DNA of 64,000 nucleotides, taken from positions 310,001 through 374,000 of the forward strand of contig CAJFCJ010000025.1 of assembly GCA_904063045.1 (NCBI GenBank), in the 5' to 3' direction. Both the position numbers and the translations under genes were made by a program. Every line of letters starts with the position of its first letter. Within the stretch, counting starts at the first letter, position 1. Under the pieces are notes generated by a model. It saw only the letters and a list, made by a program, of their open reading frames with translations. It was not told where the DNA came from and searched no databases. Positions 49,453-56,488 of the stretch are shown one piece after another. The stretch comes from Dimorphilus gyrociliatus (Eukaryota; Animalia; Annelida).

Positions 49453-52118
49453 CTATGCTACAGGCTCGATTAAAATGGGTAAACCATTTAATGATTTCAG
49501 AGTAATTTGCATGCTAGGTTTAGGCTTAAATCCCTCAACCTCTTTTAGAACGAAATTTTTCAAAATTATTGCTATTGTTGCTTTCATCTCATTTAGAGCG
49601 AAATTTTGTCCAATACAATTTCTGAAAGAGTATCGTAAAGGGAAAACATAAAAACGTATTTCATTTAATTATATATAATAACCTTGGTCCAGCCGAAAAT
49701 GGTACGAATGAAAAAGCATCTTTGTCTCCCTTTTTAGCATGTCTTTCAGGATCAAACTTTCCAGGATTTTCCCAAACGTCTGGATCTCTATGCAAGCAAT
49801 ATATCGACAAGAAAATTGCTACTCCTGTGTTCATTTAAATCAATTAGTTTACAGCCATTTCGAGTAACAAAAAAAAAAGAGAAACAAGTTCTACCTTTTT
49901 CTAGTCTCATTCCATTTGACAAAACTCTTTCTTCAGTAATTTCTCTTTGTATACTTGGTACTGGTGGACTAACTCGAAGACTTTCTTTCAAAGTTTTTGT
50001 CAGATACGTCAATTTTGATAAATCATTCCTGTCGACGAATTTTTATTATACACTTGGAATATACACATTTCGGCACGGCACATTTCAGTAACCGTTTCGA
50101 ATAGATGCATACATTAGCCGCAATAAATATTGTATATATATACTGTATATATAATCATTTAAGTAATGTACAGCATATCGAGATGCTATTAATAGAATAC
50201 AACAATATACTATGAAGAGGAGAAAGGCAAGATATAGCCACCAATTTGGATGATGAGTTATCATGACCTTTTCGGCGTCGTCAATAGTTTTATAACATAA
50301 ATTATAACAAACGTTTATTCTCTTCCTACTTTCTCTATTTCGCTTGAATTGCTAATTTGAAATGGATTTTTAGGGACGTCGGCTTTCCTTTACGTTCTCC
50401 TTCTCCATAGATTTTACTGGATAAAATGCTTACCAGGAAACGGTATCGGATTCTCCTAAAACTTCCATTACTTCCTCTCTACATTTCTCTTGAATTTCCG
50501 GGTATTTTGCCAGATTATAGAGGGCAAATGAAATTCCTGCAGCGGTAGTATCGTGACCTTCAAACATAAACGTGTCCACTTCATCAGCAATCTCCTGGTC
50601 GCTGAGACCTTTTCCGTTTTCGTCCTAAGCGAATTCCCATGATAATTAAAACTCATAACACAACAAGAAAAGGAAATTGTTTCAATTTCACGTCAAAGGC
50701 GATAATCTAAAAACTTTCTTACCCTTGCCGAAAGGAGAATATCGATAAAATCCAAATATCTTCTATGTTTCGTATAATCCTTTAATGTTTCAAATATCAA
50801 ATAAAATTATTGGAAAGCGAATACGTTTGTTTGAAATTGATCATCGTACCGGTTTTGCTTTCAATAGCGCCTGTCTTTCTTTTATAACTTTTCTGGTAAA
50901 TGAATGCAGTTTATGTATATTATACAAATAGCTCCAGCTATTTGGTGTCAAATAATAAATGAAAGGAGATAATAGAATTGGATTAACAAATCTTTGAATT
51001 AGCAGATATGTTACTCTTTGTACGGCTTGTAAATAAGGATGCTCTACTCTGTTTGCATAAAAAATAGTACATAAGATTGATTATATTACTATTTATACAC
51101 ATTTAAATATTATTTACTTTTCATTTTGGCACTCTGTATGTAAACCGAATATACACTTTAGAAGAGAATCCAAAGTCATTAAACTTATATCATCGTGCAA
51201 TTCTATTTGATTGCCATCTCCATTTTCTAGACGCGCTTGCCACTTTGCCTGAATATTCAAACAATATTTTTAGGTTATGATATATGGTTGCGTTTGCATT
51301 AAAAGAAAAATACTAACTACTAGTGCATTGGCACAATCGGAATATAATTTAGTATACGGCTTCAGAATATCAAAGTGGAAAGCGGGCGTTAATAATCTTC
51401 TATTCCTAAACCATTTTGGACCATAGCTTAAAAGTAAACCATCTCCGAGCCATAATTTTAAAAAGCTATAGCCGAAGCTATCTTTTGGTTCTGATAAAAT
51501 ACAGTATAATGTAATAAATTTAAACAAAAATTAGCTATATAAATTGATGATTTAATTAAAAAGAAGTGTTGTTTTCAATTTACCAGCAGTATTAAGTATT
51601 TCCTTGGCGTATTTTACTTTTGTTATAAACATTCTCTCAATAACTGGGCCAGTTTTTCCTTTCCATAAACCGTTAAATTCTTCGCTCATCTTTTCCATAG
51701 TTTGAAAAACTGTCTCTCTATTAAAAAACTGAAAGGTAGAAAAATTTATAAAGATTATGGAAAGAAAGAGAAAATGAAAGAGTTTTCAACTTACGTGATG
51801 CGCTTCACCATAGAACCAATGGCTTGATGGCTTAGGGAGGTCTTTGAGTGCTCGATTCATTTTTCGCCTATAAAGTATTATGGAATACATCTTTTGACCA
51901 GAAACTAGAACAAGGTAAATCCCAAAAGACGCTCCTATTATTTTCCAAGTCTTGCGATCCTATAGATGTAAATTCATAATTAAACATTTGTACTATTAGT
52001 ATAGAAATTATTCGTTTTTTCAAATGCTCACTTTAATAGTATCAAGTAGGGAATTTGTTTGGAAATATTCAATTATCTTATCGAGTCCATTTCTGCCAGT
52101 TTCTATTAAGCTTTCCAT
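49453..52118 (-). CDS. CYP4: Cytochrome P450, CYP4 clan (paralogue A), 11 exons
   Basis: MESLIETGR...; [30 protein letters not shown]; MTLDSLLKC; I-helix [13 protein letters not shown]; K-helix KESLR; FDPERH; haem motif FSAGPRNCIG; TAG at 49453-49455. All GT-AG. Confidence 0.95.
49926..50931 (-). repeat. 1006-bp inverted repeat, copy A (inside CYP4 A)
   Basis: Compared base by base with the reverse complement of 55011-56016: no indels, one mismatch (50816/55126, intronic). Confidence 0.97.
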
Positions 52119-53857: not shown

Positions 53858-56488
53858 ATGGGTGGAATATGTCGAGCTACTGAAGCTCTATTAGAAAAGC
53901 TATATAATCTGTTGGGAAAAGAGAAGGATCTTCTTAAGCTTCTAAAGGTAAATAAGCTTACAATTCTTTTACTACTTATGCTATATACTTTTGCAAATTT
54001 CTCAGAGTAAAGAGGCTCTAAAACTTCTTGGTAGTGCCCTTGGGATTTATATTGTAGCAAAATCTGCACATCATCTCTACTCTTTATTTCTTTGGCGTAG
54101 ACAAACAACGAAAGCATTGTCGCAATATCCCACCCCACCCCGACATTGGCTTTATGGACACGCTCTTTACGTAAGCTATTCATAGTGTAGTATATTCATA
54201 AGATAGTTTAATTCCCAAAAATTATTCAGTTTAAAGATCGCTCTAAAGCTTTCGAAACCATTCAAAAATTTAGTAAGGATTACAACGGTGCATGGATAAA
54301 TTCCATCGGACCATTTAGCGACCGATTGATAATTACAAAAGTAAAATACGCCAAAGATATTCTATCTACAGCAGGTAACACAATTAAAGAGTAACATGAT
54401 AAATATGTACCTAATTTGAAAGTATATTTATTAAGAACCGAAAGAACCTTACTCTTATGGCTTTCTAAAACTCTGGTTAGGAGATGGTCTCCTACTCAGT
54501 TCAGGACCTAAATGGTTTAGAAGTAGAAGACTCTTGACACCAGCGTTTCATTTTGATATTCTGAAACCTTATTCTAAATTGTTTTCGGATTGCGCTAATA
54601 CGTTGATTGTAAGTATTCGTATTATCTTTCACTACTATCTGTAACATGCATGCATTGATTTACATATACTTTTTATTTATCTATATAAATTTATATATAG
54701 AACAAATGGAAAGACAAATTAGCACACAAGGAAAATATGGATATTGAACTCTACAATGAAATTAGTCTGCTAACACTTGACGACCTTTTAAAATGTATCT
54801 TTGGTCAAGAAAGCAACTGTCAAACATCTAGGTTAACTAAACTAATTATTGTTTCTGAAAAGAGCATATTAAAATATTTAATTTCAATTTCAGCAACTCT
54901 CATCCCTACTTAGAGGCTGTTCAAAATGTAACTCGTTTACTTATGCAAAGAGCGCTTAATGTATTGAATTTAATTACATTTATATACTATCTAACACCGA
55001 CAAGTTGGTACTATTTGTATAATATACATAAACTGCATTCATTTACCAGAAAAGTTATAAAAGAAAGACAGGCGCTATTGAAAGCAAAACCGGTACGATG
55101 ATCAATTTCAAACAAACGTATTCGCATTCCAATAATTTTATTTGATATTTGAAACATTAAAGGATTATACGAAACATAGAAGATATTTGGATTTTATCGA
55201 TATTCTCCTTTCGGCAAGGGTAAGAAAGTTTTTAGATTATCGCCTTTGACGTGAAATTGAAACAATTTCCTTTTCTTGTTGTGTTATGAGTTTTAATTAT
55301 CATGGGAATTCGCTTAGGACGAAAACGGAAAAGGTCTCAGCGACCAGGAGATTGCTGATGAAGTGGACACGTTTATGTTTGAAGGTCACGATACTACCGC
55401 TGCAGGAATTTCATTTGCCCTCTATAATCTGGCAAAATACCCGGAAATTCAAGAGAAATGTAGAGAGGAAGTAATGGAAGTTTTAGGAGAATCCGATACC
55501 GTTTCCTGGTAAGCATTTTATCCAGTAAAATCTATGGAGAAGGAGAACGTAAAGGAAAGCCGACGTCCCTAAAAATCCATTTCAAATTAGCAATTCAAGC
55601 GAAATAGAGAAAGTAGGAAGAGAATAAACGTTTGTTATAATTTATGTTATAAAACTATTGACGACGCCGAAAAGGTCATGATAACTCATCATCCAAATTG
55701 GTGGCTATATCTTGCCTTTCTCCTCTTCATAGTATATTGTTGTATTCTATTAATAGCATCTCGATATGCTGTACATTACTTAAATGATTATATATACAGT
55801 ATATATATACAATATTTATTGCGGCTAATGTATGCATCTATTCGAAACGGTTACTGAAATGTGCCGTGCCGAAATGTGTATATTCCAAGTGTATAATAAA
55901 AATTCGTCGACAGGAATGATTTATCAAAATTGACGTATCTGACAAAAACTTTGAAAGAAAGTCTTCGAGTTAGTCCACCAGTACCAAGTATACAAAGAGA
56001 AATTACTGAAGAAAGAACACTTTGTGATGGACGAAGATTACCAAAAGGTAACGTCCAAGTTTCTCGTCTTTTTTAAAAATATTTAAATTCTGTTCTAATC
56101 AGGCGTTGCTGTCGTTCTTTCAATTTATGCTATTCATCATGATCCGGATGTTTGGGAAAACCCTGATAAGTTTGATCCTGAAAGGCACTCGATTAGAGGG
56201 GAGAGAGACCCTTTCGCCTTCGTTCCGTTTTCGGCTGGACCAAGGTCTTTTTCTTACATAATTTAAAGACTTTCTAAAGGTTATGAATTAAATCAAATTT
56301 TTTTTTCATATTTCAGGAACTGTATAGGGCAAAATTTTGCCCTCAACGAAATGAAAGCGACAGTAGCAATTGTCTTAAAACATTTTTTTTTATCTGAAAT
56401 TAAGGGTTTCAAAGCTCAGCCCGTAGGACAAGTAACAATAAAATCTCTGAATGGATTATGGGTTAATCTTCGACCTTTGAAGGAGTAG
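53858..56488 (+). CDS. CYP4: Cytochrome P450, CYP4 clan (paralogue B), 11 exons, head-to-head with A
   Basis: MGGICRATE...; [30 protein letters not shown]; [13 protein letters not shown]; KESLR; FDPERH; FSAGPRNCIG; TAG at 56486-56488. Same intron positions as A. Confidence 0.95.
55011..56016 (+). repeat. 1006-bp inverted repeat, copy B (inside CYP4 B)
   Basis: 1005/1006 identical to the reverse complement of 49926-50931. Confidence 0.97.

Follow-up and report, generated by a model that had tools for sequence, protein, structure and literature searches.

A near-identical inverted tract inside two head-to-head CYP4 genes of Dimorphilus gyrociliatus as a probable product of interlocus gene conversion

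How can two neighboring genes be the same, introns included, over one internal kilobase and be diverged to saturation on both sides of it? The question is raised by two cytochrome P450 genes in a 64-kb stretch of contig CAJFCJ010000025.1 (assembly GCA_904063045.1) of the annelid Dimorphilus gyrociliatus, which is called the window here; it is AT-rich (about 28% G+C) and gap-free (0 N). The left gene, DgyrCDS13415 (L), and the right gene, DgyrCDS13416 (R), lie head to head with their start codons 1.74 kb apart. When positions 49926-50931 were aligned directly with the reverse complement of 55011-56016, 1005 of 1006 positions matched without an indel, and the only mismatch was intronic, as the original prediction had said. 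The tract is best explained as the outcome of interlocus gene conversion, which probably recurred within an island of homology and produced the present identity in its last round; we give this reading a probability of about 0.85.

The left arm of the tract (49926-50931, minus strand) extends from the 3' 82 nt of exon 6 through the 5' 103 nt of exon 9, and the right arm (55011-56016, plus strand) has the same content, namely, the 3' end of exon 6 and the 5' end of exon 9, with introns 6 to 8 and exons 7 and 8 complete between them. The tract begins in exon 6 at the codons for Y-L-Y-N-I-H-K and ends in exon 9 at those for E-I-T-E-E-R, and both arms occupy the same in-frame, in-register position in L and R, with the splice sites intact in both genes. 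The sole mismatch is found in intron 6, at position 55126 on the plus strand (partner 50816). Introns 6, 7, and 8 are 70, 98, and 405 nt long, and the last of these (55509-55913, plus strand; left copy at 50029-50433) is the only long intron in either gene. A search of intron 8 for a hidden element gave no Rfam match, a fold z-score of -1.9, open reading frames without a Pfam family, and no notable internal repeat. Ungapped identity per 50-nt window, a sliding check that had been proposed together with the original prediction, was 100% inside the tract, 58 to 72% in the adjoining exon sequence, and about 30%, which is the random level, farther out; at the level of single bases, identity dropped within a couple of nucleotides at either edge. 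A repeat finder reported a longer pair, of 1150 nt at 95% identity, solely because it took in the adjoining conserved exon sequence. Within the window, this is the sole long near-identical repeat besides the terminal repeats of a transposon. Two 241-nt inverted repeats (14858-15098 and 16240-16480), 98% complementary and 1141 nt apart, fit the latter description.

Both gene models were assembled from stop-free segments and GT-AG junctions. L (49453-52118, minus strand) has 11 exons, at 52118-52032, 51959-51795, 51728-51584, 51490-51318, 51248-51118, 51048-50850, 50779-50723, 50624-50434, 50028-49895, 49824-49683, and 49621-49453, and its 530-amino-acid model gives Pfam p450 matches. R (53858-56488, plus strand) likewise has 11 exons, at 53858-53947, 54006-54170, 54230-54374, 54436-54608, 54701-54831, 54894-55092, 55163-55219, 55318-55508, 55914-56047, 56103-56244, and 56317-56488, and encodes 532 amino acids. 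The right model reproduces the annotated protein of DgyrCDS13416 (P0155) exactly, and the annotated DgyrCDS13415 protein (P0005, 468 amino acids) is the exact C-terminal part of our left model. Searched with exon 8, the DgyrCDS13415 protein was a 100% match, and its contig agrees with positions 39453-61860 of the window at 100%. The annotated version of DgyrCDS13415 begins at an internal Met and has no membrane anchor; with exon 1 (52118-52032), joined across a 72-nt GT-AG intron to the missing 5' portion of exon 2 (all within 51795-52118, minus strand), the protein reaches 530 amino acids. The two genes have 10 intron positions and phases in common, and their exons 2 to 10 are equal in length. 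Their N termini diverge; this, the exon 6 to exon 9 borders of the tract, its three introns, and the position of the 405-nt intron had all been read correctly from the DNA alone. Each gene has an uninterrupted reading frame, and on the evidence of the sequence both look functional.

Pfam PF00067 matched exons 4, 8, and 10 above the curated cutoff, and exon 11 was below the threshold (20.4 bits versus 22.8). The heme-thiolate loop FSAGPRNCIG, encoded across exons 10 and 11, is found in both L and R. In an alignment of 34 homologues, F471, G474, R476, C478 (the heme cysteine), and G480, as well as E399 and R402 of the ExxR motif, were invariant, and so was the CYP4-type I-helix motif EGHDTT (residues 342 to 347). 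The best match among solved structures was CYP4B1 (E value of 3.6e-19), with CYP3A and BM3 at 4e-9. We assigned proteins to family CYP4 if they had at least about 40% amino acid identity to named members and carried EGHDTT with its heme-linking glutamate. L and R are 43 to 47% identical to proteins named CYP4A, CYP4B1, CYP4F, and CYP4T8, and on these sequence features both belong to CYP4. In every segment, no available protein was closer to L than R was, or closer to R than L was. We conclude that the two arose by an old duplication restricted to their lineage and do not belong to separate subfamilies.

Outside the tract, the two duplicates have diverged strongly. Coding identity there was 62% at the nucleotide level (49 to 76% in individual flanking exons), and aligned flank positions showed 58.6% amino acid identity. 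By the Nei-Gojobori method, the 5' flank had a proportion of synonymous differences (pS) of 0.78 and a nonsynonymous divergence (dN) of 0.38; for the 3' flank, the values were 0.84 and 0.25, and pS was past saturation in both. Flanking introns aligned no better than shuffled sequence, whereas introns 6, 7, and 8 matched at 69 of 70, 98 of 98, and 405 of 405 positions. Thus, the statement that introns outside the tract do not align and that synonymous sites there differ was borne out by both measures. In the coding part of the tract, no difference was found in 432 nt, 91 synonymous sites included (Nei-Gojobori). The contrast was also clear along the whole coding alignment: 410 differences were distributed over 1502 ungapped sites, the longest difference-free run was 433 nt, and the second longest was 20 nt. 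In 10,000 permutations no run exceeded 47 nt, and none therefore reached the observed 433 nt; an analytic bound gave about 1e-58. The longest identical word common to L and R outside the tract was likewise 20 nt.

These data support interlocus gene conversion, which the original prediction had read from the patchwork. The run of identity between the paralogues is significantly longer than the flanking divergence allows, and it reaches synonymous sites and three whole introns, which excludes selection as its cause, while the flanks are saturated. From this pattern we infer that nonreciprocal homologous recombination replaced 1006 bp of one gene, three introns included, with a copy of the corresponding segment of its neighbor; a break would have been repaired without a crossover, with the inverted paralogue serving as template on either the same chromatid or its sister. 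The last such event would be recent, with a K of 0.001 (95% interval, 0.00003 to 0.0055), and if the mutation rate is 1e-9 to 1e-8 per generation, it would have taken place roughly 5e4 to 5e5 generations ago.

An identical stretch of 20 nt is too little for efficient homologous invasion, given the requirement for minimal homology and rejection by mismatch repair. Since L and R have no common word longer than 20 nt outside the tract, homologous recombination is unlikely to have begun between copies that had already diverged this far. The earlier description of the segment as recently homogenized stands for the last event. Recurrent homogenization since the duplication probably kept the island identical, and divergence in the tract was probably prevented from the start. 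The flanks would have escaped this homogenization and diverged, and the sharp edges would mark the limits of usable homology.

Sequence from a relative was compared with both genes. A 1261-nt genomic contig in the Logan assembly of SRR23372228 (locus L001; the sequence is called X here) contains exons 4 to 8 of the same gene type, with equal exon lengths. Introns 4 to 7 of X could not be aligned to those of R or L (z at most 2.2), and X differed from the tract at 11 to 26% of exon nucleotides, and protein identity to X over the I helix of exon 8 was 94%. In a maximum-likelihood tree of the 5' flank (exons 4 to 6a, 140 amino acid columns), X joined R with support of 75/53, and the approximately unbiased (AU) test rejected a clade of R and L (P = 0.025; log-likelihood difference, 10.2). 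In the tract tree, R and L were the same and X was their sister (97/98 support). The conflict between the two trees is suggestive at the sequence level and fits a duplication before the species split and a conversion after it. The original prediction had proposed trees of this kind, and the topologies of the 5' flank and the tract do differ as expected from conversion, with a single partial sequence and a borderline AU test behind the difference.

Two further CYP4 loci were considered. Locus L005 of the relative was a candidate for a second paralogue of the R/L type and was rejected; it is an orthologue of another CYP4 lineage (the P0158/P0159 type). In that locus, the equivalents of exons 9 to 11 are found in one uninterrupted frame (L005:489-977), which suggests intron loss or a different structure. 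The other CYP4 cluster of D. gyrociliatus (L006) contained no near-identical tract. In this cluster, the C-terminal P450 half was matched twice in DgyrCDS9679 (L006:3481-7851; P0156, 707 amino acids), which also has a 172-nt direct repeat at 76% identity, and this model is probably two tandem genes fused.

Base composition was examined for a mark of GC-biased conversion. G+C content was 31.6% in the introns of the tract (55093-55913 and 50029-50849), compared with 22.5% in the remaining 14 introns of the two genes (Fisher P = 1e-4). A biased-conversion signal was nevertheless rejected: G+C at third codon positions (GC3) is not raised in the tract (29%), and introns 7 and 8 of X are also richer in G+C, the figure for intron 8 being based on just 101 nt, a CTC repeat among them. 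At least in part, the higher intron G+C looks characteristic of the locus rather than indicative of biased conversion.

Several observations weigh against conversion as we have described it. Repeated events with variable end points might leave a zone of intermediate identity, and no such zone is found at the edges; neither the unraised GC3 nor the intron G+C adds evidence of biased conversion to the case for recurrence. The tree conflict depends on a borderline AU test (three groupings were tried) over 140 columns with one partial sequence from one relative, and neither the introns of X, which do not align, nor the distances from X to the tract, taken relative to outgroups, separate R as the donor from L as the donor. 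Finally, the exact identity of the arms rests on one Pilon-polished assembly. The three rival explanations below draw on some of the same points.

The main mechanistic rival is a one-off replicative template switch, in which a stalled fork or a broken end would have jumped to the inverted paralogue where a microhomology allowed it, copied about 1 kb, and returned, replacing a segment that had by then diverged as far as the flanks. Close inverted repeats are reportedly, according to one study, known substrates of fork-associated template switching. The perfectly sharp edges of the tract would suit such an event, as would the 20-nt limit on common words and the saturated synonymous sites, which make ordinary invasion between diverged copies very inefficient. 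It would, however, need two switches at exactly homologous, in-register positions that left no scar, indel, or duplication, and continuous homogenization of an island that never diverged covers the same facts by ordinary recombination; we therefore consider the template switch improbable. A different kind of explanation would do without any transfer of sequence, attributing the identity to purifying selection or to a recent duplication of the whole gene followed by unusually fast evolution of its flanks. The tract does encode the most conserved part of a P450, as the agreement with X in the I helix illustrates. However, constraint on the protein cannot fix 91 synonymous sites together with 573 nucleotides of intron, and purifying selection therefore fails to explain the identity; X also differs from the tract in its exons to the extent given above. 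Fast protein evolution, for its part, does not explain flanking introns at the level of shuffled sequence or the saturated pS of the flanks. Selection and fast flanks are thus already contradicted by the intron and synonymous-site data, and we give them next to no credence.

The remaining rival is an artefact of assembly or polishing, in which the genes truly differ inside the tract and were made alike by read correction, Pilon, or haplotype merging. The assembly was built from PacBio RS II reads with PBcR self-correction and a Quiver consensus, followed by Pilon with 101-bp paired reads (insert of about 300 bp), HaploMerger2, and SSPACE-LongRead scaffolding (PMC7854359). Short reads map ambiguously within a 1-kb repeat, and in one that is nearly identical these steps could erase a few real differences. 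Correction cannot, however, turn exons of about 62% identity and unalignable introns into a match of 1005 in 1006, and the product here is in register, in frame, and free of indels, with intact splice sites in both genes. Moreover, one mismatch survived, there is no N in the window, and Quiver draws on long reads that are anchored in the unique flanks; PacBio RS II reads can span the 1-kb repeat together with the 4-kb spacer between its arms. In the searchable protein and contig collections, a fragment search with the boundary-spanning frame of exon 6 returned no matches, and one with exon 8 returned only other organisms and no fragment at 100% identity, none of the matches coming from D. gyrociliatus; the exact L and R proteins were found only in GCA_904063045.1. 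Taken together, an artefact seems very improbable to us, and interlocus gene conversion remains the explanation that we prefer.

The part of the protein that conversion would have homogenized was located in an AlphaFold model built on the 34 homologues, which had a mean predicted local distance difference test score of 86 and the canonical helix order. In this model, the tract corresponds to residues 275 to 418, from the sixth residue of the G helix (270 to 299) through helices H, I (329 to 360), J, J', and K (391 to 403) to strand beta1-4 (409 to 413). Substrate recognition sites (SRS) 4 and 5 and part of SRS3 are placed inside the tract by the model; for SRS3, we take the partial overlap from its usual location at the start of the G helix. 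Outside the tract are the membrane anchor, the B-C region (SRS1), the F helix (SRS2), the heme-thiolate loop, the L helix, and the C-terminal sheet (SRS6). The proposal that the G, I, and K helices were homogenized while the B-C region and SRS6 stayed distinct holds in the model. To speak of an identical catalytic core, as the original prediction did, is an overstatement, because the heme-thiolate loop, the L helix, SRS1, SRS2, and SRS6 are outside the tract and differ. Judged from their sequences, L and R are two mosaic enzymes that are identical from the G helix to beta1-4 and differ in the anchor, SRS1, SRS2, the heme-loop region, and SRS6.

This arrangement has practical consequences. Trees of the L and R paralogues, or their dating by synonymous divergence (dS), would mislead when made from whole genes. 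The pair is a ready-made module-swap test of substrate specificity, with differences in SRS1, SRS2, SRS6, and the anchor. It also offers a clean natural case of partial concerted evolution in a gene pair for detoxification or lipid oxidation, with an exon-internal boundary, informative neutral sites, and saturated flanks.

The geometry of the arms allows a further, speculative step. Between the two inverted arms, which are 1006 bp long and 99.9% identical, is a 4079-bp spacer (50932-55010); it contains the 1.74-kb intergenic region (52119-53857) together with the part of each gene from exon 1 to exon 6a. If the arms crossed over, this spacer would be inverted, and both chimeric coding sequences that this would create stay open, at 531 amino acids each. 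It is thus conceivable, although we consider it unlikely, that the 4.08-kb head-to-head cassette with both promoters and exons 1 to 6a acts as an inversion switch, of which one orientation is known. If it did, each 5' half (anchor, SRS1, and SRS2) would be joined to the 3' end of the other gene (heme loop and SRS6), and if both orientations segregated or arose somatically, the two genes would give four in-frame P450s.

Conversion of this kind is already known for P450 genes, and the present pair is a very clean example of it. The CYP1A1 and CYP1A2 genes (CYP1A5 and CYP1A4 in birds) are arranged head to head and have undergone region-restricted conversion that included SRS1 and SRS5 (PMC3199271). 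As in L and R, head-to-head P450 paralogues with a common intergenic region underwent conversion of part of the gene, SRS5 included, while the rest stayed distinct. The present genes differ in that they are of family CYP4, belong to an annelid, and are spaced 1.74 kb apart, compared with 23 kb for CYP1A. In addition, the CYP1A events date far back and were recognized by statistical tests on exons, whereas the last event here is recent enough to have left three introns identical. The flanks of L and R are also far more diverged (58.6% amino acid identity) than CYP1A1 and CYP1A2, which are over 80% identical overall.

A second parallel is found in Caenorhabditis, where divergent or convergent paralogues such as the hsp16 and hsp70 pairs form long, near-perfect inverted repeats; according to PMC1803023 and PMC3966223, the structure of these pairs is described as kept across species more than their sequence, implying active maintenance. 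In both cases, the genome is compact, with short introns, and adjacent inverted paralogues are nearly identical in exons and introns alike. The Caenorhabditis repeats, however, usually comprise whole genes and the intergenic region, whereas here only an internal module of 1 kb is affected, and divergence has reached saturation in the promoters, 5' halves, and 3' ends. The original prediction had also taken it as established that inverted neighbors favor conversion; the review PMC3966223 does not bear this out, as it calls the effect of orientation unresolved and cites a survey of Caenorhabditis elegans that suggested more frequent conversion in same-orientation pairs. Inversion between homogenized copies, finally, has a counterpart in Saccharomyces cerevisiae, where, according to PMC9731477, a flip/flop inversion on chromosome XIV arises from inverted paralogues. 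As that source describes, those paralogues are kept identical by recurrent homogenization, which permits inversion between them, and this resembles what we propose for L and R. The yeast inversion, as given there, spans 24 kb with 15 genes and is found in both orientations in populations, whereas in D. gyrociliatus a single orientation is known, and inverting the segment would exchange parts of the coding sequences themselves.

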